A DNA stretch of 64,000 nt from IMG/VR virus record IMGVR_UViG_3300023174_000045, positions 124,001-188,000 of that record; one strand, given 5' to 3'. Of the stretch, positions 5,884 to 37,871 are shown piece by piece (positions within the stretch are counted from its first letter, which is position 1; each line of letters opens with the position of its first letter). The position numbers and the translations under genes are program-made. The notes under the pieces were generated by a model, which was not told the origin of the DNA, made no database searches, and was given only the letters and a program-made list of their open reading frames with translations.

Positions 5884-6089
5884 TGGAAACCAAAGCTAGA
5901 ACTGTGACAAGAATGATCACGTATAGAATAACCGCATGGTTGTTTACTATATTTTGGACTTGGTTGTTTACTGGTGACATTGCTTCGGCCACAGGATTTG
6001 CCACAGCTCTACACATCATGCTCAGTGTAGATTATTACATACACGAGCGTATCTGGTTAAAAATCAAGTGGGGCCGAATTGCAGGATAA
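5883..6089 (+). CDS. DUF2061-like small membrane protein
   Basis: ET..RT...YR and YYIHERIW..IKWG pattern. Confidence 0.65.
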   Translation: METKARTVTRMITYRITAWLFTIFWTWLFTGDIASATGFATALHIMLSVDYYIHERIWLKIKWGRIAG

Positions 6090-7605
6090 CTTAACCGCCA
6101 AACAAAATGATTACGCTGTGTTCTTACCAGCCATATCAGGTTTCTATGCCACATTTGTAGGCAAGCAACGCAACGAACCGTATGTGGATCCTGCACGTTT
6201 TCCTGCAGGGCTCACAGACATGGAACAAATGAATTGGCTCAACAGCCAAAAGGCGTTGTTCCCATACCGGTGGAGTCTGTATTCAGGCGGCCATGCCAAC
6301 TTGGACTTGAACAAACAAGACTGGTCAGAGGACATGGTTCGCAATCGCGAGCCAGGCACGTTCATGCTGGGCGACTCAGGTGGATTCCAGATTGCCAAGG
6401 GCCTGTGGGAAGGCGACTGGAAAGCCAACTCAGGCTGTGCCAAGGCTGAAAAGAAACGTAGTTCTATTCTTAAATGGTTGGACACGATCAGCGACTACGG
6501 TATGATCCTTGATATCCCTACCTGGGTCATTCATGACAAGAAAGCCAGCGATGCTTGCGGTATCAAGACACTGGAAGAAGCAGTGGATGCTACCAAGTAC
6601 AACAATGAGTACTTCATGGCTCATCGTAAAGGAAAGAAAAACGGTGGTGCTAAGTTCTTGAACGTGTTACAAGGTGACAACCACACATCAGCAGAAACAT
6701 GGTATCAAACCATGAAACAATACTGTGACCCTGTGCTGTACCCAGACACACACTTTGATGGGTGGGCCATGGGTGGTCAGAACATGTGTGATGTACACTT
6801 GGTGCTCAAACGTCTAATCGCACTCAAATACGATGGATTGTTGCAACCTGGCATACATGATTGGATGCACTTTTTGGGCACATCAAAGTTGGAATGGGCT
6901 GTGCTACTCACCGTGATTCAAAGAGCAGTTAGAAAATACGCTAATCCCGAATTTACTATCTCCTTTGATTGTGCCAGTCCATTCCTCGCCACAGCCAATG
7001 GTCAAGTGTACTATGAAAATGTGTTTGAACATGATTCAAAATGGTCGTATCGCATGGCACCGTCAGCAGACGACAAGAAGTATGCCACAGACACACGCAA
7101 GTGGCGAGATGGTGTACTTGCAGATGGCATCTATCCACGCTGGGAAGATAGTCCAATCAGCGACATGCTGAAGATGAAAGACATCTGTATCTATGCACCC
7201 GGAGATGTTAATAAAAATGGTAAAGAAGGCAAGACGTCGTGGGATAGTTTCTCATATGCTTTGCTGATGGGTCACAATGTTTGGATGCACTTGACTGCTG
7301 TGCAAGAAGCCAACAGACGCTTTGATGCCGGAGAACATCCTGCCATGATGCGTCGACAAGGCGGCGACTATGCCAAGTTCGAAGACATTGTGGAAGCCAT
7401 ATTTGCCGCGTCCACACGTGAGGAGAGTGAAGCCATTATTGAACACTACAGTGGTTATTGGATGGAGATTGTGGGCACACGTGGCTTCAAAGGCAAAAAA
7501 GCCATGAACGCACGTACACAATTCAATGCATTGTTTGAATATGAGCAGACTGAGCAAGAAGATTTTGATTCAACCAAACTTGATCGACTGGAGGCCACAG
7601 TATGA
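6079..7605 (+). CDS. TGT-family transglycosylase, DpdA-like (TTG start)
   Basis: DSGGFQ, LDIP, LQG, AMGG, HFLG, SFDCASP motifs; Zn-binding CxCxxC absent. Confidence 0.85.
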   Translation: MQDNLTAKQNDYAVFLPAISGFYATFVGKQRNEPYVDPARFPAGLTDMEQMNWLNSQKALFPYRWSLYSGGHANLDLNKQDWSEDMVRNREPGTFMLGDSGGFQIAKGLWEGDWKANSGCAKAEKKRSSILKWLDTISDYGMILDIPTWVIHDKKASDACGIKTLEEAVDATKYNNEYFMAHRKGKKNGGAKFLNVLQGDNHTSAETWYQTMKQYCDPVLYPDTHFDGWAMGGQNMCDVHLVLKRLIALKYDGLLQPGIHDWMHFLGTSKLEWAVLLTVIQRAVRKYANPEFTISFDCASPFLATANGQVYYENVFEHDSKWSYRMAPSADDKKYATDTRKWRDGVLADGIYPRWEDSPISDMLKMKDICIYAPGDVNKNGKEGKTSWDSFSYALLMGHNVWMHLTAVQEANRRFDAGEHPAMMRRQGGDYAKFEDIVEAIFAASTREESEAIIEHYSGYWMEIVGTRGFKGKKAMNARTQFNALFEYEQTEQEDFDSTKLDRLEATV

Positions 7606-8102
7606 ACAGAGCAGGACATGATGATGTCAACTTCTTTACAGGAACCGAAGTAGAACGCACACCAGCATTTGGTCGACGCACATTGTTTGTGGTAGGTGTA
7701 CAATCAGTGGACGCTATTGCTGCCAAGTTAGAAAATGTAGACCAACACATCTTTTTTGGTGCCAACCACAGTTTCAATCCTCAAACTCCTGCAGACTGGC
7801 GGACATGGGAAGAAATGATCACACACTTTTTGGACCTTGGATATCTTTGCACTTTGGACATTCCCATCGCCGCAGTGGAAGAATTTAATGATGGTTCATT
7901 GTGTGACTACCGCAACTTTATTCCACAGATTCGAGTAAGTGTGCCGTATACAAAACTGTGGAATTATAATACAATGTTAAAAATAGATGACAAGGACTTT
8001 GACGCTACCAATCCCGGCGTCTGGTGCCACAGTCTACACAGCCTGATGAGCCGTGAGACATTTACGTCGTGGGATGATTACAAAGGTGATAGAGAATTAT
8101 GA
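7602..8102 (+). CDS. Hypothetical protein coupled to DpdA-like gene
   Basis: ATGA overlap, 166 aa. Confidence 0.8.
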   Translation: MNRAGHDDVNFFTGTEVERTPAFGRRTLFVVGVQSVDAIAAKLENVDQHIFFGANHSFNPQTPADWRTWEEMITHFLDLGYLCTLDIPIAAVEEFNDGSLCDYRNFIPQIRVSVPYTKLWNYNTMLKIDDKDFDATNPGVWCHSLHSLMSRETFTSWDDYKGDREL

Positions 8103-8398
8103 AATGGTTTGATAATTGGTTTGCTAACAAAGTTCAAGAGTCTTGGAATCGAACCAGGGCGAACCCATCAACATCAAAAAATGAAATCATGGTCAGTGAA
8201 GATCGAAACAGCATCGGCGCCAGCCGACACAGAATAAACTTCACTGTGTATCGTGCCAATGGTGGCATGATGGTAGAATACAACAGATATGATGAACGCA
8301 AAGATCATCACTCTTGTGAATTGCACATTGTACATCCTGATCAAGACCTTGGTGACGCCTTGGGCAAAATTGTAACATTTGAAAGTTTGAAATCATGA
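8099..8398 (+). CDS. Hypothetical protein
   Basis: ATGA overlaps both sides. Confidence 0.75.
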   Translation: MKWFDNWFANKVQESWNRTRANPSTSKNEIMVSEDRNSIGASRHRINFTVYRANGGMMVEYNRYDERKDHHSCELHIVHPDQDLGDALGKIVTFESLKS

Positions 8399-8829
8399 AC
8401 CAAGAACAAAGAGACCAAGCAGAACGTGTGATGGAACACGCACAGCGACAAATCTGGGTCACATGGCAACGGGAAGGTATCCATAAATATCCTGCTGCCT
8501 TGACAGATCCTGCCCTTGCTGATGTACAATTCCTTGGTTATCCTCATCGTCACATGTTTCATTTCCGGGTGTGGATTGATGTGTTCCACAACGACCGAGA
8601 TCTTGAGTTCATCCAATTCAAACGCTGGTGTGAATCGCTGTATAGCAGTGACAATTCTGTTTTAAGCCTTGATCATAAAAGTTGCGAGATGATCGCAGAC
8701 GACCTATATATACAGATAGCATCACGCTATCCTGGTCGTGTGGTACATATCGAAGTCGCAGAAGACGGCGAAAATGGCGCACTGATCAAATACGAACTAA
8801 CCCGACCCAACCTCAACATTGTCATCTAA
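8395..8829 (+). CDS. QueD-paralogue T-fold protein, DpdL-like
   Basis: LGYPHRHMF = LxxxHRHxF; SCEMIA and EDGENGA T-fold motifs. Confidence 0.7.
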   Translation: MNQEQRDQAERVMEHAQRQIWVTWQREGIHKYPAALTDPALADVQFLGYPHRHMFHFRVWIDVFHNDRDLEFIQFKRWCESLYSSDNSVLSLDHKSCEMIADDLYIQIASRYPGRVVHIEVAEDGENGALIKYELTRPNLNIVI

Positions 8830-8839
8830 GGAGAACACC

Positions 8840-9064
8840 ATGGCAAGACCCACCTTCAAACCCAATCCCAAAGTCACAGAGATCCAAGAGGATCTTGAAG
8901 TGTACTTGGACTTCTGTCAGGACTATGGCTATCGTTACAACGAGGCCGATTTGTATAACTTCAAGAGTTATGCATGGCAACAATTCAACAAGTGGCATCA
9001 AGGCAAGAATGCCAAGAACATGTGGGACGAAGATACTCGTCGCTTTGCAGGATATCGCACATGA
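8840..9064 (+). CDS. Hypothetical protein
   Basis: SD AAGGAG, 74 aa. Confidence 0.75.
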   Translation: MARPTFKPNPKVTEIQEDLEVYLDFCQDYGYRYNEADLYNFKSYAWQQFNKWHQGKNAKNMWDEDTRRFAGYRT

Positions 9065-10263
9065 GAAAGTTGTACTACATGGGCCTTGAAAGTTATGAGG
9101 CCCGTTACACACTGCAACTAACTGAATGGAATCGACGTGTGTTTGAACGTCGAGGCTTGGATGTGGTATACGTACCTGGTGTCACCATTGACAACACCCA
9201 AAGCATCAGTGTTGGACAGGTGTTGGATGCGCATGGTCGCAGTTACTTTTCAATGAGCCAAATGATGAACTTGGTTCAACTCATGAAGAATGGAGAAGTC
9301 ACCAATGAAGATGTGGTCTACTTTGAAGACATGTTTCAGCCAGGTATCGAAAGTCTCCCTTACATCATGGATCAAATTGATCCTAGCCAGCGTCCCCGTG
9401 TTTATGTTCGTTGTCTTGCTCAGGCCATTGACCCTGATGATTTTGTACATGTGTGGGGCATGGCGAACTGGATGGCAACGTATGAAAAAATGGTCAACCA
9501 CTTTGTAACTGGCGTGTTAGCCACCAATGAAGAAATGGTGGCTCACATGCGTATTGCAGGTTGGACTGCTCCAATCTACAACATCTCCGGCTTGGCATTT
9601 GGCAAAGAGGAAGTGCTGGAACGCATTGGTGGTGCCAGCAACATTCGACCATTTGCAGATCGACCAAGACGAGTGGGCTTTGCGGCACGTTGGGATCAAG
9701 AGAAGCAACCAGGCTTCTTCATGGACTTGATTGAGATGTATGGTGAACTTACCACAGAGCCTTGCGAGTTTGCAATCTATTCGGGTGGCCCATTGCGTAG
9801 CAACAATCCAGAATATGTTACTAGAGCCAGGGCCATGGAAGCAGCCGGCAAACTCAAGATATACGACAACATCTCAAAGAACGAATACTATGCACATCTC
9901 AACAACACTCGTGTGTTGTTTAATTGTGCGTTACAAGATTGGGTGTCTAACACAGTTTCAGAAGCAGATACTCTGGGCTGTAATGTGTTGTATCCTGCTT
10001 ATAGATCTTTCCCCGAAACTTTTTCAAATGATCCCAACAGGCTGTATGTGCCTTGGAGCATAGATGATGCTTATCACAAAATGCAAAACCTTTTACGAGA
10101 ACCACATCACAACATGGGTCTCATATCTAACTGGACTGATGGTACTGTTGATCGCATCGTTGATATACTGCTTGGTAATGGTGAGCAGTGGAATCGTGCA
10201 GGCAATAGATATCGTGATCACGTGGCTGAAGAAAAGTATCATGTTGTAAAGGTTGAAGAATGA
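9061..10263 (+). CDS. GT-B fold glycosyltransferase (GT4-like)
   Basis: FAARWDQEKQP, QDWVSNTVSEADTLGC motif; ATGA overlap start. Confidence 0.8.
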   Translation: MRKLYYMGLESYEARYTLQLTEWNRRVFERRGLDVVYVPGVTIDNTQSISVGQVLDAHGRSYFSMSQMMNLVQLMKNGEVTNEDVVYFEDMFQPGIESLPYIMDQIDPSQRPRVYVRCLAQAIDPDDFVHVWGMANWMATYEKMVNHFVTGVLATNEEMVAHMRIAGWTAPIYNISGLAFGKEEVLERIGGASNIRPFADRPRRVGFAARWDQEKQPGFFMDLIEMYGELTTEPCEFAIYSGGPLRSNNPEYVTRARAMEAAGKLKIYDNISKNEYYAHLNNTRVLFNCALQDWVSNTVSEADTLGCNVLYPAYRSFPETFSNDPNRLYVPWSIDDAYHKMQNLLREPHHNMGLISNWTDGTVDRIVDILLGNGEQWNRAGNRYRDHVAEEKYHVVKVEE

Positions 10264-10454
10264 TTAACGAACACTTCAAAAATCAAATAGAGCAAGGTGC
10301 TACTACTATGTTTTTCTATGGCTTAGAATCAGGGTCGGGCCCGTTTAAAATTAATATCACAAATCACAAAGATACATTGGACACATTTCCAACTAACTTA
10401 GAGTTTGTTAGAATGCTGAGTGAAAGTATGCCATTATTCAAGGAAATCGAATGA
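10260..10454 (+). CDS. Hypothetical protein
   Basis: Coupled to both neighbours. Confidence 0.6.
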   Translation: MINEHFKNQIEQGATTMFFYGLESGSGPFKINITNHKDTLDTFPTNLEFVRMLSESMPLFKEIE

Positions 10455-11410
10455 GCACAGTAGTTGTCACAGGCATCTCAGGATTCATAGGTGGCCAAAC
10501 TGCACTGCTGTTGAAAGACGCAGGCGAACGTGTGATTGGCATTGATCGCCACCCACTGCCAGCACACCTCAAAGGTGTGTGTGATCGATTTGTGCAGGAA
10601 GATTTTTCCAGCAAACACGCACTCAGTGTGATTGTGCAAGAACTCCCTGACGCCATTGTACACTGTGCCGGTGCCAGCCTGGTTGGTCCCAGCATGAAGG
10701 ATCCAGCCTTGTACTACCAAAACAATGTGGTAGACACATTTGAATTGTTGGAAATTGTTCGCCGGGCGTTACCAAAAACCAAGATTATCTTCAGTAGCAG
10801 TGCAGCCACATACGGTGAGCCTGTGATGTTGCCTGTACACGAAGTTGATCCTGCTGAACCTGTGTCACCATATGGTCAAAGCAAACTCATGGTGGACATG
10901 ATGTTGGAATCATATCATCGTGCCTATGATCTCAACTGTGTGAGTTTTCGTTATTTCAATGCCTGTGGTGCTGATCCAAAGAAGCGGCATGGTCAAGCAC
11001 CGGGTGCCACACACATCATTGCCAGAGTGTTGGAAGCCCTTAGAGATGACAGCGAGTTCACGTTAAATGGTGTAGACTTTCCCACCCCGGATGGTACTTG
11101 TGTGAGAGACTACGTGCATGTGGAAGACATAGCACGAGCACACAGCCTGGCTATCTATCATGACATTGCCTCAGGTGTGTATAATCTAGGCTCCAACAAC
11201 GGAACCAGCAATCGAGAAATCATTGCCGCAGCCGAGCGTGTGACTGGACGGAAATTGAAAGTGATTATGGGTACAGCCAGGCCGGGTGATCCTGCTGTGC
11301 TCACTGCCAGTGCTGCCAAGTTTGGCCGGGTTGGGGAAGGTTGGCGACAGTTTGAACTGGATGACATGATTCAACACGCCTGGAACTGGTATGTTCGAAA
11401 AGATACTTGA
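10451..11410 (+). CDS. galE: UDP-glucose 4-epimerase-like SDR
   Basis: TGISGFIG, SSSAATYG, YGQSK, RYFNACG, RDYVHV. Confidence 0.88.
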   Translation: MSTVVVTGISGFIGGQTALLLKDAGERVIGIDRHPLPAHLKGVCDRFVQEDFSSKHALSVIVQELPDAIVHCAGASLVGPSMKDPALYYQNNVVDTFELLEIVRRALPKTKIIFSSSAATYGEPVMLPVHEVDPAEPVSPYGQSKLMVDMMLESYHRAYDLNCVSFRYFNACGADPKKRHGQAPGATHIIARVLEALRDDSEFTLNGVDFPTPDGTCVRDYVHVEDIARAHSLAIYHDIASGVYNLGSNNGTSNREIIAAAERVTGRKLKVIMGTARPGDPAVLTASAAKFGRVGEGWRQFELDDMIQHAWNWYVRKDT

Positions 11411-11981
11411 GTTTGAAACAGCCGTGGTCCAGTTCACTGGTGCGCCATATGCTGTGATGACTGACTGTTGTACCCATGCCATTGAATTGTGCATGCGGTA
11501 TGACCGGGTGGAGTTTTGTGCATTCACCCCATTTACCTATTTGAGCATACCCATGCTCATGCACAAGTTAGGTATCAAATATGCGTACGAAGTAGGTGAT
11601 CCTGCTCAATGGGTAGGCGAATATCGGTTTAGAAAAACACGAATCTGGGACAGTGCTCGACGCTTAGAACGCAACATGTATCGACCAGGACAGATACAAT
11701 GCGTGAGTTTTGGATATGACAAACCCTTGCCTATTGGGCGTGGCGGTGCAATATTGTTGGATGATGCTGAAGCTTATCACAACTTGTTGGCCATGCGTTA
11801 CGATGGACGAGATTTAACTGCATCGCCCTGGGTCTCACAACAAACTTTTAAGGTCGGATATCATTATCGACCTACAATAGAAGAAGCTGAACGTGGATTG
11901 GAGTTGTTAAATCAATACACCAGCCAACCACCAAGACAGATAGTTTATCCAGACTGCAGACAAATTATTATTATAGATTGA
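11391..11981 (+). CDS. DegT/DnrJ-type sugar aminotransferase (short)
   Basis: CCTHAIEL, WDSA, SFGYDKPL..GRGG with PLP Lys. Confidence 0.75.
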   Translation: MFEKILEFETAVVQFTGAPYAVMTDCCTHAIELCMRYDRVEFCAFTPFTYLSIPMLMHKLGIKYAYEVGDPAQWVGEYRFRKTRIWDSARRLERNMYRPGQIQCVSFGYDKPLPIGRGGAILLDDAEAYHNLLAMRYDGRDLTASPWVSQQTFKVGYHYRPTIEEAERGLELLNQYTSQPPRQIVYPDCRQIIIID

Positions 11982-12006
11982 CAACACAATCTAAATACTG
12001 TACAAT
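11978..12006 (+). promoter_or_regulatory. sigma70-type promoter for folE
   Basis: TTGACA-17-TACAAT. Confidence 0.7.
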
Positions 12007-12024
12007 TATGTATTGGAGAAATAA

Positions 12025-12765
12025 ATGGGCTACGACAAAGTATATATTAGCAACGACGAAGAAACTGTGAATACCAGCAAAAATTTATCACAAATACTTA
12101 GAGAACAAATGAAAGCCCGAGGTCAACGCTTCTGGGCTGGCGACAACATCAGCGATTACATGAGCGAAGCAGTGAAAGAAAAACTCATTGACGAAGCCAC
12201 AGTGGCATTTGAAGGTGTGTTAGATGCGTTACTAATTGACAGAGAAAACGATCCAAACTCAAAAGGCACAGCACGGCGCCTGGCTAAAATGTACTACAAC
12301 GAAATAATGGCAGGAAGATATGAACCAGCACCAGACGCAACAGCATTTCCAAATGATTCAGCAGACCGTTATGAAGGCATGCTGGTTGTACGCAGTGAAC
12401 TTCGCAGTATGTGCAGTCATCATCATCAACCAGTTAGTGGGGTCGCCTATATTGGAATCATCGCTGCCAACAAGCTCATTGGTCTATCTAAGTATACTCG
12501 CATTGCTCAATGGTGTGCTAGGCGTGGTACTTTACAGGAAGAACTGTGCATAGACATTGCCAATGAAATCATGGCAGCAACTGCGTCAAAGGATGTTGGT
12601 GTGTACATTCAGGCAGTGCATGGATGCTGTGAAAACCGTGGCATTATGGCACATAGTTCGTTGACACAGACCACTGTGTTGCGAGGTGCGTTTAAAACGG
12701 ATGACAGTGTTAAAAAAGAGTTCATGGACAATATTAAATTGCAACAAGAGTTTGCACCTCGCTGA
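12025..12765 (+). CDS. folE: GTP cyclohydrolase I
   Basis: SMCSHH, GLSK..R, LQE, HGCC..RG. Confidence 0.95.
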   Translation: MGYDKVYISNDEETVNTSKNLSQILREQMKARGQRFWAGDNISDYMSEAVKEKLIDEATVAFEGVLDALLIDRENDPNSKGTARRLAKMYYNEIMAGRYEPAPDATAFPNDSADRYEGMLVVRSELRSMCSHHHQPVSGVAYIGIIAANKLIGLSKYTRIAQWCARRGTLQEELCIDIANEIMAATASKDVGVYIQAVHGCCENRGIMAHSSLTQTTVLRGAFKTDDSVKKEFMDNIKLQQEFAPR

Positions 12766-12772
12766 TAAAAAA

Positions 12773-12828
12773 GTAGTACTTGAGTGCTACTTTTTAAGAT
12801 TGACTTCAAATTGATAATTTGTTACAAT
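12773..12828 (+). promoter_or_regulatory. 8-2-8 palindrome plus sigma70 promoter
   Basis: GTAGTACT-TG-AGTGCTAC then TTGACT-17-TACAAT. Confidence 0.7.
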
Positions 12829-12862
12829 AGGCATATTAATTGTAACTTTAGGTATTGCTGTC

Positions 12863-15304
12863 ATGAAGAGAATCGTGCTCTGGATTTCGATGTCTGGGAT
12901 TGTTGTTGCTGTGACCGCCTGTAGCGGCGGCGGCGGTTCGTCAGTCACAGTCAAAAGTGATCCGTACATAAGTACTCCCAATCTTTATGTTAGAACCGAA
13001 GTTCCATACTCGACTCCGGTATTACAGGCTGTGGTTGATCCCTTGGTCAATGTGGTTGACAACGGATATAAATGGGCTGTAGCTGATACGTTTGCCGCAG
13101 ATATTGCCGGCACTGGCGGGCAAGACTTGATCATTGCTGGTCGTATGACACAACCTACTCCAGTGTCTGATTGGGGCAACTTTCGACTCAGTATGTTGAC
13201 CTGGCAAAACAATAAGTTGGTTGATCGAACTGCTCAATGGTTTCCGAACGATACCAATATTATACTAGGGTCTGAACCCAGTGTAAAGTTTGCGGACTTT
13301 TTTAAAACTGGACGCAACGATATGTTTCTGAACACTGGCACCGACATGCAACATTACGGTCCCACTTATTTTTACCGCAACACTGGCACCAGTTTTGAGA
13401 GACAAGTTTTAACCACAGCAAATATTTGGTCACATGATTCAGCCATTGGCGACCTCAACGGTGATGGTTACACTGATATTGCCATCATTGATTATGGTCC
13501 CAACGCTACATTAGCGTTCAACAACAAAGTCAGCGGATTCAATGTGTACACACAAGATCCAACTAACATGCAACTGCACACTGGTAGTAGTGTGGCCATT
13601 GGTGATTTTATGGGCACTGGTCAAGGGCAATTGGTAGTCACAGATGCTCGTGCCAATGTTGGAACAAATCCCACAAAGTTATATTCATGGGCAATTGACT
13701 CAGGAAACAAACTAAATTTCACCGAAGTCAGCACCTTACCTACTCCCAGATTTGAGTTACCAAAATGGGCAGGCCATGGGTTCGCGCCCGGCAGTCATAA
13801 TGTACGGGCAGTGACGTATGATTTCAATGATGACAAAATCCCTGATGTGTTGATTTTTAGTAGACCCGGATTAGGTACTGTCAACTACAAGTACAGTGAG
13901 ATACAGTTTTTAAAGAATGATGGCAAAGGTACATTTTCTGATGTAACAGATACTGTGCTGGTAGGATATGACACCAACACCTATGTTTGTTATAATCCAA
14001 AATTTCTAGATCTCAACGGTGATGGTCGAGAAGACATATTGGTCGGCGGTTCGGACTGGACTGGTGTTAACAACAGCACACAATTTTTGTTGAAAAGTTC
14101 TGATGGCAAATATGTGGCTGCATATCAAAATATCATGACTGATTTTGCCACACAGGTCAACACTATCCAAGGCGCAGAGAATGTGGGCAATACTGTGAAT
14201 CTGCTGAAGGCACCCAATGGCAAACTGTACTTGGTCAGTGCGGTGAGTTTTATCAATCAAGCCAATGATCGACAGTTAGCGATATACATGAGCGAATTAG
14301 GCAGTCAGTCAGTGACAACTGCGCAAACAGCCATTAATTTAATATTGCAAAAATGGCCATACATGACTGTACCACAGGCCAATGCTGTGCTGGCCCAGAC
14401 CAGTGCCAAGTATCTTGGTGGCAATGTAATTGATTACGATGCATTATGGACACCGTCGGGCACACTTAGTTTAACCACTGCCGGTGGTATCAAGTCCATA
14501 TCTGGTTACATCAGTGGAGTGAACTTTGGTTCAACCGAATCAGTGGTAACTGACAACTTAAAACGATCTTTTACTGTGAATCTTGGATCCATGCATGTTG
14601 ATCGGCCAAGTGCGTTCAGTCAAAGTGTGGGATTCACCGAACAAGACACGTTGACCAGTCAAGCCGAATATTTAATCAACGGTCCGGTTGCTAATTTTGG
14701 TGACATAAGAGTAGGATCTAACTACAACACTCAAACTTCAAGTACCAGTCAATTGCAATATACCCTGGGCATACCCAACTACTATCAAAAGGGCAATTTT
14801 TCATTAGGAGCACAATACACACACTTGAATTCCAATCCCTGGATTAATTTTACCGGAGCATGGGGTGAAATCACTGGTAGCAGTATATTAGACAATGTAT
14901 TGACTTATCGCAAAAATGGATTTTCTGCACAGGCCAGTTTGATGTATGTGGCCACCAGCATTGACCCTGGCTTGGTTACCAAAGTCAGTCCTATGTTGGC
15001 TGCCTGGACAGAGGTTGGATACAAAACTGATCCTGAATCACCAATGGGAAATACCGGAGTGTACTTTGGCATCAAACCGGTAACATTGAGTGGTCATGTA
15101 AGTGCTAAAATACCAACAAGTGTTGACATGTCAGGCAATATTGTGTATACTAACAAGAAGTTAACTGTACAGGATCAGGTCATCGGCTATGCAAGAATTA
15201 CATATACCAATCAACTGAGTCGACACAGTCAATTTAAAGTTTCTGCAATGGGCACCGCAACAGGTGAGTACAAAATGGTAAATGAACTTAAACTTCAATT
15301 TTGA
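12863..15304 (+). CDS. FG-GAP/VCBS-repeat lipoprotein with probable C-terminal beta-barrel
   Basis: Lipobox VTAC; repeats GDLNGDGYTDI, DFNDDKIPDV, DLNGDGREDI; C-terminal Phe. Confidence 0.75.
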   Translation: MKRIVLWISMSGIVVAVTACSGGGGSSVTVKSDPYISTPNLYVRTEVPYSTPVLQAVVDPLVNVVDNGYKWAVADTFAADIAGTGGQDLIIAGRMTQPTPVSDWGNFRLSMLTWQNNKLVDRTAQWFPNDTNIILGSEPSVKFADFFKTGRNDMFLNTGTDMQHYGPTYFYRNTGTSFERQVLTTANIWSHDSAIGDLNGDGYTDIAIIDYGPNATLAFNNKVSGFNVYTQDPTNMQLHTGSSVAIGDFMGTGQGQLVVTDARANVGTNPTKLYSWAIDSGNKLNFTEVSTLPTPRFELPKWAGHGFAPGSHNVRAVTYDFNDDKIPDVLIFSRPGLGTVNYKYSEIQFLKNDGKGTFSDVTDTVLVGYDTNTYVCYNPKFLDLNGDGREDILVGGSDWTGVNNSTQFLLKSSDGKYVAAYQNIMTDFATQVNTIQGAENVGNTVNLLKAPNGKLYLVSAVSFINQANDRQLAIYMSELGSQSVTTAQTAINLILQKWPYMTVPQANAVLAQTSAKYLGGNVIDYDALWTPSGTLSLTTAGGIKSISGYISGVNFGSTESVVTDNLKRSFTVNLGSMHVDRPSAFSQSVGFTEQDTLTSQAEYLINGPVANFGDIRVGSNYNTQTSSTSQLQYTLGIPNYYQKGNFSLGAQYTHLNSNPWINFTGAWGEITGSSILDNVLTYRKNGFSAQASLMYVATSIDPGLVTKVSPMLAAWTEVGYKTDPESPMGNTGVYFGIKPVTLSGHVSAKIPTSVDMSGNIVYTNKKLTVQDQVIGYARITYTNQLSRHSQFKVSAMGTATGEYKMVNELKLQF

Positions 15305-16257: not shown

Positions 16258-17297
16258 GTGTATGGACTGATTGGGATCCATTGGAAGAAGTCATAGTAGG
16301 CAACTGCTATTCTCCTGGTGCTCTCAATTGGTTTGTTGAACCCGCATTACAACACAAGTTCAACAACATACTAACGGAAACCAAACAAGATCTCAATAAT
16401 CTAGCAGTGTTATTGCAAGGACTGGGTGTACAGGTACACCGTCCGCAAGTACATGCCAGTACACACAGTGTAGATTTAGCAACATTCTCAGTACCATGCC
16501 CTACCAGTCCAATGGTGCCAAGAGATCAATATCTAGTGTATGGCGATACAGTGTATCAAACCTATACCAGCATGAATGACAGGTATTTTGACAGTCTCGG
16601 CTATTATAATATCTTTCAAGGATTATTTGATCAAGGGCATAACTGGATCAGTCAGCCGCCACCTAATCTTCGCAACTTACCTGCTGATAAAAATTGGAGC
16701 AATCAAGGATCGCTAATTTACAATCACTTGTATCACAATCAACTGTTGTGGCACACTGCTACCATGTTCAAGTGTGGCGATAGACTGATTACCAATACCA
16801 CAGGCCCAGGCACTCAATCTGGGCTAGAATGGATGCGCAGAAACTTGCCTGCAGACACCGTGGTAGAAAATACTAGTACCGCCATGCACAACTGGGGACA
16901 CATTGATCATGGATTTTTCATGATTGACGATGACACAGTGATCTGTGTTGATCGTGAGTTTGTTCCTGAATGTTTGCGTGACAAAACTGTGCATGAGGTA
17001 TATCAGTATCTTCCCAAGGAAAGTATTGATCCTGCTACACCGATAGACCGACTGCTTGATCCCAGCAAAGGATACGAACAGGTTGTGGCGTTTGATACCA
17101 ATGTATTGGTAGTTGATTCGCACAATATTGTGTTTGACAACAACATGCCCGAACTGTTTGAGTTCTTGGCAACACTTAGTGTAAAATGTTATGTAGCACC
17201 GCTGAGACACAGAAAGTTTTGGGCTTCAGGAATACATTGTTCAACCTTGGATATTCGACGCCGTGGTCAAAAAAGAAAGATTATCAATGAAGTATGA
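16254..17297 (+). CDS. Amidinotransferase (pentein family)
   Basis: WDPLEEVIVG, PRD, HIDH, GIHCSTLD with catalytic Cys. Confidence 0.85.
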   Translation: MSVWTDWDPLEEVIVGNCYSPGALNWFVEPALQHKFNNILTETKQDLNNLAVLLQGLGVQVHRPQVHASTHSVDLATFSVPCPTSPMVPRDQYLVYGDTVYQTYTSMNDRYFDSLGYYNIFQGLFDQGHNWISQPPPNLRNLPADKNWSNQGSLIYNHLYHNQLLWHTATMFKCGDRLITNTTGPGTQSGLEWMRRNLPADTVVENTSTAMHNWGHIDHGFFMIDDDTVICVDREFVPECLRDKTVHEVYQYLPKESIDPATPIDRLLDPSKGYEQVVAFDTNVLVVDSHNIVFDNNMPELFEFLATLSVKCYVAPLRHRKFWASGIHCSTLDIRRRGQKRKIINEV

Positions 17298-17688
17298 AAC
17301 ACTAGAAGAAGCGCAGGCAGCAGGTGTTGCGCCTTGGGACCTCAAGATTGGAGAATATAGCGACTACCATGTCTCTGTGTTCCAAGATCGATATCCTGTG
17401 GCTCGTGGACATTTGTTGTTTGTGCCGCAATACAATACAGATGAAGTGATAACAGACTGCTTTGAATCAGCCATGCGGCATGGTCGTAGACTGGTACGAG
17501 ATGGAGAATGTGATGCATTCAACATTGGCATCAACATGGGCGAGGCCGCTGGCCAAACTGTGATGTATCCACATGTGCATTTGATTCCCCGACGCCATGG
17601 CGACTGTGCTGATCCTGTGGGCGGTATACGTGGAGTCGTATTTGGACAAGCCAACTACAAAGCCGCAGGCTATCAACAGCCAGCATAA
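17287..17688 (+). CDS. HIT-family nucleotide hydrolase
   Basis: AGQTVMYPHVHLIPR. Confidence 0.85.
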   Translation: MKYETLEEAQAAGVAPWDLKIGEYSDYHVSVFQDRYPVARGHLLFVPQYNTDEVITDCFESAMRHGRRLVRDGECDAFNIGINMGEAAGQTVMYPHVHLIPRRHGDCADPVGGIRGVVFGQANYKAAGYQQPA

Positions 17689-17770: not shown

Positions 17771-18268
17771 ATGTCACCAGTAACATACAAATACACATCA
17801 ACCAAAGAATATCACGATGCATTTCCATGCGCATATCGGCAGTGGCGAGCAGACAGCCATTGTAATTTGATACACGGCTATTCGTTTAGTATGAAGTTTT
17901 ATTTTGGCACTGACAACTTAGACGCACGTAACTGGGCCGCTGACTATGGCGGCTTAAAAGAACTCAAAGGTGTGTTGGAAAGTCAATTTGATCATACATT
18001 GCTAGTGGCCGAAGACGATCCTGAACTAGAATTGTATTTAGAAATGCAAAACAAAAACATTGCCAAGTTGACTATATTACCTAAACTAGGATGCGAAGGA
18101 CTTGCTGATCAGCTGTACAAATATGTCAACGGCGTTTACATTCCTGACTTTTGGGGCCCAGGTGAAGCTGAACGTCTTTGGTGCTATCGTGTAGAGGTGC
18201 GTGAAACACAAAGTAACATGGCTTTCCGAGAAGGTCATAGAGAATGGAACGAAGATTTATTTGTGTGA
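17771..18268 (+). CDS. queD: 6-carboxytetrahydropterin synthase
   Basis: HCNLIHGY, FDH, GCEGLA, VEVRET. Confidence 0.9.
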   Translation: MSPVTYKYTSTKEYHDAFPCAYRQWRADSHCNLIHGYSFSMKFYFGTDNLDARNWAADYGGLKELKGVLESQFDHTLLVAEDDPELELYLEMQNKNIAKLTILPKLGCEGLADQLYKYVNGVYIPDFWGPGEAERLWCYRVEVRETQSNMAFREGHREWNEDLFV

Positions 18269-18320: not shown

Positions 18321-19163
18321 ATGAGCACACATGATTTTGACATTTCCGTATTACTTCCCACGCGGGCAAGAACTGACATGCTGTTTCGCAGTATTCGAAC
18401 ACTGTTTGATCTAGCAGACAACAAAGATCGCATATATCTTTTGGTTGGTTTTGACCGCGACGATGCCAAGGGCATTGACTATTTCAGTCAAGAGATACAA
18501 CCTTGGTTGGCCGAAAATGACATTGAATACAGTGCTATGATTTTTGAGCCCATGGGGTATGAAAACTTAAATGTGTATTACAATCTGTTGGCCAAGCAAC
18601 AATCCGCTGATTGGTATTTTGTCTGGAATGATGATGCAACCATGGTCACCCAGGGATGGGACACAGTGATTCGCAACCACAACGCTGAGTTTCAAATACT
18701 CAAAGTGCATACGCATCATGAACACCCTTACAGTATTTTCCCCATTGTGCCACACAAATGGTATGAACTATTGGGCACATTGAGCCGACATCAGATGATT
18801 GACGCTGAAATAAGTCAAATGGCTTATATGTTGGACATGGTAAAAATTGTCGACATTGATGTGATTCATCAACCTTCGCCTGTGCCCAAAGTGCGATTTG
18901 AAAATACCATCAATGATGTTAGAGATTTTCATCATGAGACCTGGAGGAATCAACGCATGAAAGATTGTGCAACGCTGGCAACATACATGCACTCAGTTGA
19001 TCCCAACAGTACCACATTCTTCAGAAATGTGCTGGAAGGCCGGCAAGATCCTTGGGAAAAATTAGTGGCCAACGACATCAACAAACAACAAATACAATTT
19101 CCCATTGCAGTAGAACAACAAACATATTTTCCTGCTGAACTAAAGATTGGTCTGAATTCATGA
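18321..19163 (+). CDS. GT2-like glycosyltransferase
   Basis: SVLLPTR, VWNDD motif. Confidence 0.75.
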   Translation: MSTHDFDISVLLPTRARTDMLFRSIRTLFDLADNKDRIYLLVGFDRDDAKGIDYFSQEIQPWLAENDIEYSAMIFEPMGYENLNVYYNLLAKQQSADWYFVWNDDATMVTQGWDTVIRNHNAEFQILKVHTHHEHPYSIFPIVPHKWYELLGTLSRHQMIDAEISQMAYMLDMVKIVDIDVIHQPSPVPKVRFENTINDVRDFHHETWRNQRMKDCATLATYMHSVDPNSTTFFRNVLEGRQDPWEKLVANDINKQQIQFPIAVEQQTYFPAELKIGLNS

Positions 19164-20380
19164 GCATGATGCAAAGCCAAACAATTGATCATTGTTTGAT
19201 TTCCAAAAACGCAGTGACCAAGATTTTAGATCTAGGGCAACATCCTTATGCTGACACATTCGTAAGACCAGATCAGTTGCATTTGTCTGAACCTGTGTTT
19301 CCATTGCATGTGTATATGAATGAGAAGTCAGGACAAATTCAACTGCGCTACATCAGCAACGCTGAAGAACGCTACAATTTGTACAGTTACAGTTACACTT
19401 CCAGCAATTCAAAATTTGCAAGAGATCACTGGGACAGTTACGCACGGTCTATTGTTGAAAAATGTCGGCCTCAAGGGCTGGTTGTAGAAATTGGCAGCAA
19501 TGACGGATATTTGATCAATCAATTTAGATCACATCAACTGCCTACTCTAGGCGTTGACAGTAGCCGATACATGTGCGACCTGGCCGAATCACTGGGACAA
19601 CCTTGTGTGAATGCTGTGTTTGATCTTGCAGTGGCCGAACAAATAACCACTCAACACGGCCTGGCCAAATTGGTCATTGCCAACAATGTGTTCAATCATG
19701 CCAATGATCCTGTGAGCTTTGCTCGTGGTGTGGCTGAGTTGTTGGACCACGACGGTGTGTTTGTGTTTGAACTGCCTTACTGGGGAGCCATGGTTGACGC
19801 CGCACGATTTGACCAAGTATATCATGAACATGTGAGTTATTTCACTGTAAAAAGCTCTTGGAACCTGTTGCGAGCAGCTGGCATGACCATGATGGACTTT
19901 GAGCATGTGGATTACCATGGTGGTTCCATACGTGTGTTTGCACAAGTGGGCAACAAGTCAATGTCTGTCAAAATACAACAAGCCATAGAACAAGAAACTG
20001 CCGACGGATTGTTTTCTGTGCAACGATATCAAGTCATGCAACAACAAATGATACAGCAACGAGACACATGGTTACAGAATTTTTATACCATGCGTGTGGT
20101 GTCTCCTGATGCAGTGATAATTGGTGTGGGGGCTGCTGCCAAAGCCAACACATGGTTGAACTGGCACGGATTAAACTCATCCACATTGCATTGCATCACT
20201 GACAGTTCTGAGCACAAACAAGGCAAGTACACTCCACTGAGTCGAATTCCCATCCGGGGTGACGAAGAGTTTGCCAAGCATGCTGAACCCATTGCGCTGA
20301 TACTGAGCTGGAACATCAGCGCCGGACTCAAACAAGCCTTGTTGAAAATCAATCCCAACACAAAGTTTATTTCACAATGA
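19160..20380 (+). CDS. NDP-sugar C-methyltransferase
   Basis: LDLGQHP, EIGSNDG, ANNVFNH, YHEH, GAAAKANT. Confidence 0.85.
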   Translation: MSMMQSQTIDHCLISKNAVTKILDLGQHPYADTFVRPDQLHLSEPVFPLHVYMNEKSGQIQLRYISNAEERYNLYSYSYTSSNSKFARDHWDSYARSIVEKCRPQGLVVEIGSNDGYLINQFRSHQLPTLGVDSSRYMCDLAESLGQPCVNAVFDLAVAEQITTQHGLAKLVIANNVFNHANDPVSFARGVAELLDHDGVFVFELPYWGAMVDAARFDQVYHEHVSYFTVKSSWNLLRAAGMTMMDFEHVDYHGGSIRVFAQVGNKSMSVKIQQAIEQETADGLFSVQRYQVMQQQMIQQRDTWLQNFYTMRVVSPDAVIIGVGAAAKANTWLNWHGLNSSTLHCITDSSEHKQGKYTPLSRIPIRGDEEFAKHAEPIALILSWNISAGLKQALLKINPNTKFISQ

Positions 20381-20787
20381 AACACTACAACATCTACAAC
20401 AACAATGAAAAAGGTCTGGGAAGTTTCCAAGACAATCGAGGAACCATCACAGATATTTTTCATCATATCAACGTAAACTCTGCTTGTATCATTACCAACA
20501 CTCCAGGTGCAGTTCGTGCCAATCACTATCATGAATTGACCACACAGTATACCTATGTGTTGTCTGGATCATTGGATTACTATTCCAAGCCGGTGGGCAG
20601 TACAGAACCAGCTGATGTGATCACAGCAGGCCCCGGCGATATGATAATCAGCAAACCCAATGAGATACATGCATGGCGTACCGGTGCCGAAGGATGCACA
20701 TTGATTGCATTTGCACAAGGTCCACGTGGCGGCGAAGACTACGAAAATGACACTGTGCGTGTAGATTCAATCATTCCCGATGCCTAA
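20377..20787 (+). CDS. Cupin, sugar isomerase/epimerase-like
   Basis: DNRG, RANHYH, EIHA. Confidence 0.75.
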   Translation: MKHYNIYNNNEKGLGSFQDNRGTITDIFHHINVNSACIITNTPGAVRANHYHELTTQYTYVLSGSLDYYSKPVGSTEPADVITAGPGDMIISKPNEIHAWRTGAEGCTLIAFAQGPRGGEDYENDTVRVDSIIPDA

Positions 20788-21373
20788 AGCAGTTGTATTT
20801 GGGGTACATGGCGGCATAGGCACAGCCACTACAGAACATTTTTTGGCAGCTGGATACACTGTGGTGCCTGTAACCAGACAATTGATTGACTTTGCACAAC
20901 TTAACAGTTACAATGCAGTCAGTGAGTTGTTGATGAATCATCAACCGGATGTGGTTGTTAACTGTGCAGGTCATTTTGACCGCACAAATACCCAACCTCA
21001 CAGCATGACGTTTGATGTCAATGTTGGTTCTAATTGGGCCGTTATACAGCATTATATGAACAACGTACCTAAAAAATCAGTGCATGTAGTAATGGTGGGA
21101 TCCAGTGCTTACAGTTCTGGTCGCAAGAACTACATGTTGTATTCGGCCAGCAAGGCAGCAGTGTACAACTTATGGCAGGGTGCAGTTGAATATTTTTTAG
21201 ACAGCACAGTGTGTGTAAGTTTGATCAATCCTGTGCGAACTCGTACTGCCATGATTGGAACTGATGTCGCTGGTCCATGTTTGGAACCAGCTGACGTGGC
21301 TAGAGAAATTTTAAACATTGCATCAACTACAAGAAATCAAGTGGTTGATATGAACTATTCCAAGGAGAAATAA
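20780..21373 (+). CDS. Short-chain dehydrogenase/reductase
   Basis: GVHGGIG, VVNCAG, YSASK. Confidence 0.85.
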   Translation: MPKAVVFGVHGGIGTATTEHFLAAGYTVVPVTRQLIDFAQLNSYNAVSELLMNHQPDVVVNCAGHFDRTNTQPHSMTFDVNVGSNWAVIQHYMNNVPKKSVHVVMVGSSAYSSGRKNYMLYSASKAAVYNLWQGAVEYFLDSTVCVSLINPVRTRTAMIGTDVAGPCLEPADVAREILNIASTTRNQVVDMNYSKEK

Positions 21374-22147
21374 ATGAAAATTGGTATTATTGGTCGAGGC
21401 ACTGTGGGCAAGGCAGTGTATGAAGGCTTGTCACATCTAGGGCACAAAATGAGTTTCTTTGATCCAGCATATGAAGGATCCACGCTGAATGATGTATTGA
21501 GCACAGACTGTGTGTTCATTTGTGTGCCAACCAATCAAGCTGACAATGGCGATTGCGACACCAGCATTGTGGAAAAAGTCATCAGCGAATTAGACACCGC
21601 CGGATACCAAGGCCTAGTGGGAATCAAAAGCACTGTGGTACCCGGCACCAGCGATCGACTGTCTGCTGCTCATCCTAACTTACGCATTTGCAGTGTGCCA
21701 GAATTTTTACGTGCCAAAACAGCCTTGGCCGACTTCATGTACAATCATGATTTGTTGATCATTGGCAGTCATCGTGAAGAGGACTTTGACACAGTCAAGG
21801 CCATACACGGGAATCTTCCCAAAGCAGTGTCGTGTGTCAAACCAGCCGAAGCCGAAGTGGTCAAGTACTTCAACAATGTAAATCATTCAGTGCAGATTAT
21901 CTTTGCCAATATTGCCTACGAGGTATGTAACAAACTAGGTTTGGACTACAACAATGTTTACAATGCCATTATCAAAAGAGAATGTTTCAATCCAGCATAC
22001 TTGATGTGCAATGACAACCTGAGAGGATTCGGCGGACATTGTTTGCCCAAGGACACCGCTGCCTGGGCCAACTTGGTACGTGATCTAGGACTTGAATTTG
22101 ACCTGATCACGGCCACCATCAAAGACAACGAGAAAATAAACAAATGA
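21374..22147 (+). CDS. UDP-glucose/GDP-mannose dehydrogenase family (no C-terminal domain)
   Basis: GRGTVG, CVPT, KSTV, PEFLR, GFGGHCLPKD. Confidence 0.88.
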   Translation: MKIGIIGRGTVGKAVYEGLSHLGHKMSFFDPAYEGSTLNDVLSTDCVFICVPTNQADNGDCDTSIVEKVISELDTAGYQGLVGIKSTVVPGTSDRLSAAHPNLRICSVPEFLRAKTALADFMYNHDLLIIGSHREEDFDTVKAIHGNLPKAVSCVKPAEAEVVKYFNNVNHSVQIIFANIAYEVCNKLGLDYNNVYNAIIKRECFNPAYLMCNDNLRGFGGHCLPKDTAAWANLVRDLGLEFDLITATIKDNEKINK

Positions 22148-36503: not shown

Positions 36504-36578
36504 GGGCTGATAGCTTAATGGTAAAGCAGTCGACTCATAATCGATTGAGTCTAGGTTCAATTCCTAGTCAGCCCACCA
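36504..36578 (+). tRNA. tRNA CAT, Ile2-like (or Met)
   Basis: Cloverleaf, CGACTCATAATCG arm as in ileX, CCA. Confidence 0.85.
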
Positions 36579-36581
36579 ACA

Positions 36582-36656: not shown

Positions 36657-36670
36657 GTAAATACAACAGT

Positions 36671-36753: not shown

Positions 36754-36764
36754 AAGGAACAATC

Positions 36765-37238: not shown

Positions 37239-37242
37239 CAGC

Positions 37243-37860: not shown

Positions 37861-37871
37861 ACATGTTGAAA

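Follow-up and report, generated by a model that had tools for sequence, protein, structure and literature searches.

A predicted GT4-like glycosyltransferase encoded among the 7-deazaguanine genes of a giant freshwater phage

Gene content of the locus

The DNA analysed here (the window) is a stretch of 64,000 nucleotides comprising positions 124,001 to 188,000 of the 225-kb virus record IMGVR_UViG_3300023174_000045. ORFs were read with genetic code 11 only, and sequencing reads were not examined. Between positions 6079 and 12765, an unbroken chain of genes is located on the + strand; two further genes of the pathway lie downstream:

6079-7605, +: DpdA-like guanine transglycosylase (508 aa, long form)
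7602-8102, +: 166-aa protein of unknown function, conserved with the module
8099-8398, +: 99-aa ORF, poorly conserved
8395-8829, +: DpdL (QueD paralogue, proposed 7-carboxy-7-deazaguanine decarboxylase)
8841-9064, +: 74-aa ORF of unknown function, overlapping the start of the next gene
9061-10263, +: GT4-like glycosyltransferase (GT) with predicted GT-B fold (400 aa)
10260-10454, +: 64-aa ORF, lineage-specific
10451-11410, +: UDP-glucose 4-epimerase (GalE)
11391-11981, +: half-length DegT/DnrJ/EryC1-like protein (196 aa)
12025-12765, +: GTP cyclohydrolase I (FolE)
17771-18268, +: QueD-like 6-carboxytetrahydropterin synthase
23123-23995, +: QueE-like radical SAM enzyme (7-carboxy-7-deazaguanine synthase)

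The DpdA-like gene overlaps the following gene by 4 bp, as do the genes at 7602-8102 and 8099-8398. DpdL is separated by an 11-bp gap from the 74-aa ORF, which is preceded by a ribosome-binding-site-like AAGGAG and overlaps the GT start by 4 bp (ATGA). The GalE and DegT-like genes overlap by 20 bp, and FolE follows after a gap of 43 bp. No convincing + strand terminator lies between 6079 and 12765; the numbers of promoter-like and terminator-like sites equal those of shuffled sequence. One promoter-like site (11978-12006) sits just before folE. The observation of the first-pass annotation, namely that GT-B, GalE-like and DegT-like genes run in a chain of overlapping or adjacent ORFs from the DpdA-like gene to folE, is therefore confirmed. 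Its GT start at 9061 is correct, because the ortholog of BUCT-ZZ01 aligns from that Met, but it had missed DpdL at 8395-8829.

The GT itself has no hit in Pfam, PHROGs or NCBIfam, and a single-sequence search of the PDB gave only noise; its identity rests on fold, profile and orthologs. The AF2 model has a pLDDT of 93.8 and a pTM of 0.90 and shows the two Rossmann-like domains with an inter-domain cleft typical of GT-B enzymes. Foldseek assigned a probability of 1.0 to matches with glycogen synthase, BshA, SPS, PimA and MshA, and VIA Z scores were 24-27 over 317-346 residues. Individual values were 27.1 for sucrose-phosphate synthase, 26.3 for BshA, 23.4 for BGluT and 20.8 for T4 alpha-glucosyltransferase. 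Pfam families Glycos_transf_1 and Glyco_trans_1_4 are just reached by the 63% identical BUCT-ZZ01 ortholog (28.3 against 27 and 26.5 against 26.4) and both are carried by a distant member (P0303) in precomputed data; as the window protein stays below the gathering scores, its assignment by this criterion is left undecided. The family profile hits GT4 enzymes in the PDB, and an R-x-D-x-E-K stretch aligns with WlaC and GlgM. In an alignment of 112 diverse members, R210 and K215 are invariant and D293 and E301 (DX7E, corresponding to the EX7E-type acidic pair) are at least 90% conserved. In GT4 enzymes, the Arg/Lys pair binds the diphosphate of the sugar nucleotide.

The DpdA-like protein gave no hit in Pfam (including PF01702, TGT), PHROGs or NCBIfam, a single-sequence PDB search gave only noise, and a word search returned only close relatives without Pfam label. 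However, the 50 best Foldseek hits of its AF2 model (pLDDT 83) are all Z. mobilis TGT (E about 5e-8, TM 0.4-0.5). The motifs DSGGFQ (99-104) and FDC (296-298), which are invariant in 40 relatives, stand where TGT has the catalytic residues Asp102 and Asp280. Comparisons of the profiles of three DpdA types (508 aa here, 416-437 aa in ACP17/BUDD/BUCT, about 300 aa in small phages) were not significant; hhalign of the window type to the ACP17/BUDD/BUCT type gave an E-value of 0.21. The short-DpdA profile found nothing in the PDB, and DpdA3 of phage phiST found nothing in the complete relative G001. The kinship of the three types thus rests on shared motifs and, for the window protein, on the fold; it is named DpdA-like without assignment to a subfamily.

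DpdL contains LGYPHRHMF, which fits the motif LxxxHRHxF defined by Cui et al. 2023 (PMC10516641) in place of CxxxHGH of QueD; 119 of 131 family hits have this motif. The protein matches phrog_17812 (E 1.9e-38) and is 58% identical to the ACP17 protein and 35% identical to phiST gp040 (E 9e-10). FolE was identified by PF01227 (E 4.7e-39); the best NCBIfam hits are FolE models, albeit below their cut-offs (131.5 bits against 202). The QueD-like protein matches PF01242 and is 53% identical to QueD of ACP17, but contains CxxxHGY instead of CxxxHGH. For the QueE-like protein, the best NCBIfam hits are all QueE models below their cut-offs, and it is 44% identical to QueE of ACP17 over its full length. 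Neither QueC nor a Pfam-level TGT was found in the 225-kb record or in a complete relative of 346,856 bp.

GalE scored 284.8 bits for TIGR01179 (cut-off 262.3) and also matches PF01370. The DegT-like protein scored 41.8 bits for PF01041 (threshold 19.8) and keeps the motif of the PLP-binding lysine around K110, which aligns with the lysine of 9bgp. It is, however, only about half as long as a normal enzyme of 360-380 residues. It aligns only to residues of about 35-55 and 174-243 of a 382-aa sugar aminotransferase, and lacks about 70 internal residues and the whole C-terminal domain. Its activity is unproven and it is not regarded here as a working aminotransferase.

Conservation was assessed in 80 related loci. 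The DpdA-like protein was found in 68, the 166-aa protein in 73, the 99-aa ORF in 23, the 74-aa ORF in 78 and the 64-aa ORF in only 7 of them. GalE follows GT in 79 loci, in most relatives directly, and the DegT-like protein is conserved in its short form at full length in 74. The 166-aa protein also occurs in several diverse loci between DpdL and GT, and is 31% identical to the ACP17 protein located between FolE and DpdA. It had no family hit, an atlas search gave only a weak, sub-threshold PHP-like lead, and it is not similar to phiST gp041 or to the "glycosylase" of Phosso. For the 99-aa ORF, Pfam and PHROG searches gave no hit.

Association of the glycosyltransferase family with DpdL and DpdA

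The GT belongs to a phage-restricted, GT4-like family of 792 clusters at 50% identity. In 56 diverse loci, the GT lies next to DpdL in 51 and next to a short DpdA family with a DSGA motif in 52, often overlapping the latter. FolE, QueD and QueE are located within a few kb in about 40 loci, and at least four gene orders occur. Among 50,697 GenBank phage records, 28 carry DpdL, and all 18 records with the GT are among these. They cover Kyanoviridae (BUCT-ZZ01), Busanvirus (ACP17), the PA5oct group, and Xanthomonas (BUDD/X1), Burkholderia (BCSR5) and Sinorhizobium (Phosso) phages. A scan of 185,579 species genomes with an alignment of a closer set of family members yielded only 8 loci; all are MAG contigs, and those long enough to show neighbours carry the same array. 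In contrast, the phages proven to hold plain 7-deazaguanine (dDG) in their DNA (phiST group) have DpdL and DpdA3 but no GT. The enzyme is thus an add-on, as would be expected of a further modification step.

The first-pass annotation had stated in advance that its inference of a sugar-bearing hypermodified G would fall if this GT clade were unlinked to Dpd genes elsewhere; the loci listed above show the opposite. They also bear on the alternative it had raised, glycosylation of virion proteins, and more generally on a function of GT, GalE and the other sugar genes unrelated to deazaguanine, for example at the host surface. In this view the genes lie among the que genes only because all genes here run in one direction. 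Jumbo phage genomes do have long co-directional gene blocks, the que genes of this window are spread over 18 kb among many sugar-nucleotide genes and an FG-GAP protein, and GalE and the DegT-like gene accompany the module only in this jumbo-phage lineage. However, the GT family keeps its place beside DpdL and DpdA in phages of other families that lack the sugar genes, and through several rearrangements. For the GT this alternative is largely refuted and very improbable. The interpretation of the first-pass annotation is therefore supported in part: that the GT belongs functionally with the deazaguanine genes is strongly supported, the sugar-bearing G in DNA is an inference, and the amino-sugar part is weak.

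Possible acceptors of the sugar

The region is best explained as a QueC-less, DpdA/DpdL-type 7-deazaguanine DNA-modification module of a jumbo phage of about 350 kb, with the GT as a dedicated accessory enzyme. In the proposed course, FolE, QueD and QueE would turn GTP into 7-carboxy-7-deazaguanine, DpdL would give 7-deazaguanine, and the DpdA-like transglycosylase would exchange it for guanine in phage DNA. The GT would then transfer a hexose from a UDP-sugar onto the deazapurine, either on the free base before insertion or on the DNA afterwards. In this lineage, GalE would supply the donor by interconverting UDP-glucose and UDP-galactose. The resulting sugar-bearing modified G would shield the DNA from host nucleases. 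The analysis itself demonstrates the identity of the enzymes, the absence of QueC and the tight, repeated linkage of the GT family to DpdL and DpdA, whereas the acceptor, the attachment atom (C7 carbon, N2 amine, or the carboxylate of the precursor), the sugar and the presence of the product in DNA are deduced. Sugar transfer by the GT was not assayed. This explanation as a whole is realistic but not proven, and is considered about as likely as not.

Several findings are in line with it. PA5oct carries the GT, its DNA resists restriction enzymes with G in their sites, and it has a modified G of undetermined chemistry; beyond this, no chemical data exist for any GT-carrying phage. A pyrimidine acceptor of the T4 type is not suggested by the gene content: no match to PF00303 (ThyA-like hydroxymethylase) was found in the window's record, in the complete 347-kb relative or in three complete small phages with the module. 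A Tet_JBP search was likewise empty, but had no positive control. On the other hand, 7-deazaguanine has no hydroxyl group to take a sugar, so that an unusual C-, N- or acyl-glycosidic bond would be needed. No precedent for such a bond in DNA, no glycosylated deazaguanine in phage DNA and no description of this enzyme were found in the papers searched. Moreover, the role of DpdL as decarboxylase is itself only predicted and was not reconstituted in E. coli.

It is also possible, though doubtful, that the GT glycosylates a free small molecule of the pathway (a pterin intermediate, 7-carboxy-7-deazaguanine or 7-deazaguanine) and that the glycoside never enters DNA. It could be a soluble metabolite, a storage or detoxified form, or a means to control the free base pool, resembling cyanobacterial pterin glucosides or N-glycosylated preQ0 antibiotics; huimycin and dapiramicin are glycosylated preQ0 natural products. 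The GT family is acidic (median pI 5.8; window protein 5.26), unlike the basic short DpdA (9.15), and its closest structures mostly act on small acceptors (BshA, MshA, LmbT, SenB, and the tetrahydrobiopterin glucosyltransferase of Synechococcus), so the acceptor may not be DNA. FolE and a PTPS-type enzyme also start pterin synthesis, and a Vut_1/YhhQ-type deazapurine transporter family occurs beside the module in 12 diverse loci. However, validated phage DNA glycosyltransferases of the GT-B fold also have BshA and MshA as top structural hits, so the fold neighbours do not discriminate. Furthermore, the GT abuts or overlaps DpdA, the DNA-inserting enzyme, in most diverse loci, the module sits among replication genes, and the family is confined to phages.

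Modification of tRNA rather than DNA was considered as well. Here, the TGT-like enzyme would insert a deazaguanine at position 34 of GUN-anticodon tRNAs and the GT would glycosylate it, comparable to mannosyl- and galactosyl-queuosine in animals. The window encodes 34 tRNAs including Tyr(GTA), His(GTG), Asp(GTC) and Asn(GTT), and the best structural matches of the 508-aa enzyme are tRNA-guanine transglycosylases. The animal enzyme that mannosylates queuosine is a GT4-type protein, and GalE could supply UDP-galactose. However, three complete phages with the same GT-DpdL-DpdA module have no tRNA genes at all, and homologues of DpdL and DpdA3 give fully substituted dDG DNA in phiST; this evidence is indirect, as the substrate of the DpdA-like enzyme was not measured. 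In the absence of QueC, neither preQ0/preQ1 nor queuosine with its sugar-accepting diol can be made, and in PA5oct it is the DNA itself that resists restriction. This reading is very unlikely.

Finally, the GT-like protein might make no glycoside, but act as a structural or regulatory partner of DpdA or DpdL, or use its nucleotide-binding domain for another reaction needed to insert the base. DpdL plus DpdA of ACP17, a phage that has the GT, gave no dDG in E. coli, and the authors suspected missing enzymes (PMC10516641); in addition, the GT and DpdA genes often overlap. A prediction of the complex of GT and short DpdA gave no verdict and is no evidence either way. The conservation of R210, K215 and the DX7E pair, and the fact that phiST makes dDG without any GT, argue against this possibility, which is likewise very unlikely.

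Relation to known systems and implications

The pathway itself corresponds to that of Cellulophaga phage phiST (FolE, QueD, QueE, DpdL, DpdA3; PMC10516641), which also lacks QueC, has a TGT-superfamily transglycosylase and a DpdL with the LxxxHRHxF motif, and carries these genes beside the replication genes. phiST differs in that it has no GT, GalE or DegT-like gene. Its DpdA3 comprises 259 aa compared to 508 aa here, without detectable sequence similarity, and a P-loop protein sits between its DpdL and DpdA3. The cultured phages ACP17 (Acidovorax), BUDD/X1, BCSR5, Phosso, the PA5oct group (Pseudomonas) and BUCT-ZZ01 (Synechococcus) possess homologues of the GT (22-63% identity) and of DpdL (40-64%), with FolE and QueE (and QueD where one is annotated) alongside. 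Their DpdA is the 416-437-aa type, and none has GalE or the short DegT-like gene in the cluster; BUCT-ZZ01 adds a second GT and a phosphoribosyltransferase.

The T4 alpha- and beta-glucosyltransferases and the enzymes of 5hmC-glycan gene clusters (bioRxiv 10.1101/2023.12.21.572611) share the GT-B fold (for T4 alpha-glucosyltransferase, the Z score of 20.8 covers 324 residues), are phage-encoded beside base-modification genes and have BshA and MshA as common structural neighbours. They use, however, the hydroxyl of 5-hydroxymethylcytosine, whereas the genes linked here make a purine analogue. The tetrahydrobiopterin alpha-glucosyltransferase BGluT of Synechococcus PCC 7942 (PDB 5ze7/5zer) is a GT-B enzyme that acts on a product of a FolE plus PTPS pathway. 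It is a cellular enzyme of about 12% identity without link to QueE, DpdL or DpdA, and its acceptor has side-chain hydroxyls which the QueE product lacks. In glycosylated queuosine of animal tRNA, a hexose is put on a 7-deazaguanine derivative after insertion by a TGT-family enzyme, but the acceptor is the cyclopentenediol of queuosine.

What is new is the linkage of the GT family to the DpdA/DpdL module. 7-Deazaguanine DNA modifications are a main way for phages to escape restriction, and are now known targets of dedicated host glycosylases and nucleases. All described variants differ by small groups at C7, and all known DNA sugars sit on pyrimidines. The most far-reaching possibility, which is somewhat less likely than not, is that a widespread, phage-only GT4-like family puts a sugar on 7-deazaguanine in DNA. 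This would be the first glycosylated purine hypermodification, probably via a bond that DNA glycosyltransferases are not known to make (a C-glycoside at the electron-rich C7, or an N2-glycoside), and lineages would tune the sugar with their own nucleotide-sugar genes, as GalE would do here. The occurrence of a GT tied to the DpdA/DpdL module in dozens of unrelated phages points to a missing chemical class, or at least to a missing step. It may also explain two published puzzles, namely why DpdL plus DpdA of ACP17 failed to give dDG in E. coli, and what the unidentified modified G of PA5oct is.

Gene arrangement and identity of the predicted glycosyltransferase

The IMG/VR virus record from which bases 124001-188000 were analyzed comprises 225,080 bp and was judged to be about 65% complete. 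Close relatives of its genes lie on contigs of 347-365 kb, and one relative is a complete 346,856-bp genome with terminal repeats. The window therefore belongs to a jumbo phage. It encodes a family B DNA polymerase and, at 36504-47726, a block of 34 tRNA genes and a permuted (two-piece) tmRNA with the tag peptide ANDEQFALAA. The tmRNA matches the betaproteobacterial model at 133.8 bits, which is a possible hint at the host. At 40544-40622, ARAGORN called a tRNA with anticodon CTA, which would read amber codons; the tRNA model of Rfam did not list it at the gathering score, and no conclusion about the genetic code was drawn. On the + strand, genes run without a real gap from 6079 to 12765:

6079-7605 (+), 508-aa DpdA-like protein
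7602-8102 and 8099-8398 (+), 166-aa and 99-aa proteins
8395-8829 (+), 144-aa protein with the DpdL signature
8841-9064 (+), 74-aa ORF
9061-10263 (+), 400-aa candidate glycosyltransferase (GT)
10260-10454 (+), 64-aa ORF
10451-11410 (+), GalE
11391-11981 (+), 196-aa DegT-like protein
12025-12765 (+), FolE

Most junctions are 4-bp overlaps. Terminator-like and promoter-like sites are no more frequent than in shuffled sequence, and none on the + strand separates these genes convincingly. The arrangement described in the first-pass annotation, a chain of GT, epimerase and aminotransferase-like genes leading from the DpdA-like gene to folE, is thus confirmed. GalE passes its NCBIfam equivalog cut-off, and FolE and the DegT-like protein pass Pfam. 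QueD (17771-18268) and a QueE-like radical SAM enzyme (23123-23995) lie further on. QueD of this phage and of the jumbo lineage contains CxxxHGY where canonical QueD has CxxxHGH; among the loci examined, 54 have Y and 38 have H. A second radical SAM protein with a twitch domain (30768-32183; NF033640, 247.8 bits) is unrelated to QueE by its best hits.

The candidate GT itself matches no Pfam, PHROG or NCBIfam model. Its identity was deduced from four lines of evidence. First, its 63%-identical ortholog in Synechococcus phage BUCT-ZZ01 just passes Glyco_trans_1_4 and Glycos_transf_1. Second, a search of 1.84 billion representatives yielded 792 clusters at E-values up to 0.001. Third, a profile of 112 diverse members hits GT4 enzymes in the PDB through the stretch that holds the invariant residues R210 and K215. 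Fourth, the AlphaFold model (pLDDT 93.8) is a GT-B fold, the best neighbours of which are sucrose-phosphate synthase (Z 27.1), BshA (Z 26.3), PglA, glycogen synthase and PimA. The tetrahydrobiopterin glucosyltransferase scores Z 23.4 and the DNA-acting T4 alpha-glucosyltransferase Z 20.8. The assignment to GT-B made in the first-pass annotation is therefore correct.

The 508-aa protein contains the motifs DSGGFQ and FDC at the positions where tRNA-guanine transglycosylase (TGT) has its two catalytic aspartates. A Foldseek search with its model (pLDDT 83) returned only TGT structures among the 50 best hits. In contrast, neither Pfam TGT nor profile comparisons with other DpdA types reached significance; we therefore call the protein DpdA-like and do not assign a subfamily. 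An HHpred-grade profile comparison of the three DpdA types was not made. The 144-aa protein, which had not been mentioned in the first-pass annotation, carries LGYPHRHMF. This sequence fits the signature LxxxHRHxF that defines DpdL, the proposed 7-carboxy-7-deazaguanine decarboxylase (Cui et al. 2023). The protein is 58% identical to its ACP17 counterpart and 35% identical to phiST gp040. Neither QueC nor a Pfam-level TGT was found in the 225,080-bp record or in the complete relative. The gene set FolE, QueD, QueE, DpdL and DpdA without QueC is the one tied to 2'-deoxy-7-deazaguanine (dDG), which fully replaces dG in phiST and in Vibrio phage VP1.

Linkage of the glycosyltransferase family to the Dpd genes

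The linkage of the GT to the deazaguanine genes is the main result. In order to assess it in cultured phages, 50,697 phage records of GenBank were searched. Homologues of the GT exist in only 18 of them, and each of these 18 records also has DpdL, which occurs in 28 records. The GT-carrying phages include PA5oct, ACP17, BUDD, X1, BCSR5, Phosso and BUCT-ZZ01. In Acidovorax phage ACP17, the gene order is QueD, FolE, a homologue of the 166-aa protein, DpdA, GT, DpdL, QueE. In Xanthomonas phage BUDD, it is FolE, a PAPS-reductase-like protein, two unknowns, GT, an annotated queuine tRNA-ribosyltransferase, DpdL, QueE. In Sinorhizobium phage Phosso, DpdL and GT lie between the polymerase genes and FolE. 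In BUCT-ZZ01, the order is QueE, a phosphoribosyltransferase, an unknown 118-aa protein, QueD, FolE, a second GT, DpdA, DpdL, GT. The phosphoribosyltransferase of this cyanophage cluster (7093-7554 of the BUCT-ZZ01 locus) and the second, 447-aa GT-like protein right after FolE (9010-10353) hint at a nucleotide-level route or a second sugar.

Furthermore, 53 diverse viral loci, retrieved with an alignment of distant members, and 3 metagenome contigs were examined; co-occurrence over all 792 family clusters was not counted. The GT lies next to DpdL in 51 of the 56 loci, and FolE, QueD and QueE lie within a few kb in about 40. A family of about 300 aa with the motifs FLDSGAHS, GIGG, HGFA and SVDSTSW, a short DpdA, occurs in 52 loci and mostly abuts or overlaps the GT. 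At least four gene orders occur. In small phages, a Vut_1/YhhQ-type transporter lies next to the GT module in 12 diverse loci (for example at 12061-12843 of the diverse locus L117); this family takes up deazapurine precursors. In 38 diverse loci, a family of proteins with a median of about 540 aa by stop-to-stop ORF lies a few kb from the GT module of the small phages; its member in the diverse locus L088 (9366-10604) has a uracil-DNA-glycosylase domain.

A scan of one bacterial or archaeal genome for each of 185,579 species yielded only 8 loci, all of which are contigs binned into bacterial MAGs. Two of them belong to one Haliscomenobacter MAG; the others include Chitinophagales, Rickettsiales and Phycisphaerae. 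Those contigs that are long enough to show neighbours carry the same phage-type array of DpdA, the 166-aa homologue, DpdL, GT and FolE. They are probably phage contigs binned with, or alongside, hosts. The family is thus confined to phages and bound to the Dpd genes. The first-pass annotation had specified that a GT clade unlinked to Dpd genes elsewhere would refute its hypothesis; these data represent that test, and the hypothesis survives it. The proven dDG phages of the phiST group possess DpdL and DpdA3, but no GT. The GT is therefore an optional addition to a working dDG pathway.

GalE, the DegT-like gene and further sugar-related genes

Among 80 loci of the window's own lineage (GT identity 81-94%), the array polymerase, DpdA, 166-aa protein, DpdL, 74-aa ORF, GT, GalE, DegT-like, FolE is conserved. 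GalE is present in 79 of these loci and the DegT-like protein, at full length, in 74. Neither of the two appears in the modules of other lineages. The DegT-like protein keeps the PLP-lysine motif. However, it aligns only to residues about 35-55 and 174-243 of a 382-aa sugar aminotransferase and lacks the C-terminal domain. As it is conserved, it is not a decaying fragment, but an activity was not established, and the amino-sugar reading of the first-pass annotation is therefore weak. A function of GalE as donor supplier (of UDP-galactose or its N-acetyl form) is reasonable, but inferred.

More nucleotide-sugar genes lie between QueD and QueE (19160-23034) and after QueE (24425-24916). This second set codes for a sugar C-methyltransferase, a cupin, short-chain dehydrogenases including a 197-aa SDR, a 257-aa truncated nucleotide-sugar dehydrogenase, an epimerase/dehydratase and an RfaE-domain-II-like nucleotidyltransferase. 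The genes suggest an unusual sugar. They were detected in only a few of the 80 related loci (4-7 for most; the epimerase hits are weak), though many of those loci end before this region. An 813-aa FG-GAP repeat protein (12863-15304), which lies between FolE and the rest of the pathway genes, was detected in only 9 of the 80 loci. In contrast, a HIT-family protein (17263-17688) and an unknown 280-aa protein (18321-19163), which flank QueD, are conserved in 47 and 48 of the 80 loci, respectively, and could belong to the pathway.

Inferred role of the glycosyltransferase

In the course that we consider most likely, FolE, QueD and QueE make 7-carboxy-7-deazaguanine, DpdL removes the carboxyl group, DpdA exchanges the base into DNA, and the GT adds a hexose to the deazapurine. 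The first three of these steps follow the published scheme, in which the role of DpdL is itself a prediction, whereas the addition of the sugar is our inference from linkage. Two alternative targets can be set aside. Phage tRNA in general is not the target, because three complete phages with the module have no tRNA genes. A T4-type hydroxymethyl-pyrimidine is not the target either, because no ThyA-like enzyme is present in the 225,080-bp record, in the complete relative or in three complete small phages with the module.

A chemical difficulty is that 7-deazaguanine offers no hydroxyl group; the sugar would have to go to C7, to N2 or to the carboxylate of the precursor. The GT family is acidic (median pI 5.8) while the short DpdA is basic, which leans toward a free-base acceptor. 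On the other hand, validated phage DNA glycosyltransferases share the same small-molecule GT4 neighbours, and the fold therefore does not decide between the two. A complex prediction for GT with DpdA gave no verdict.

In the literature searched, no report of a glycosylated 7-deazaguanine in phage DNA and no mention of this GT was found, and the main text of Cui et al. does not contain the word "glycosyl". These authors report that DpdL plus DpdA of ACP17 gave no dDG in E. coli and that other enzymes may be needed. A 2025 preprint shows that the DNA of PA5oct resists restriction enzymes with G in their sites and that this phage carries que genes; the modified G was not identified. The interpretation offered in the first-pass annotation is supported in part; the detail of an amino sugar is doubtful. 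Compared to the known dDG pathway, the module described here differs by a GT whose functional link to the deazaguanine genes is solid, and a glycosylated base as its product is plausible and testable.
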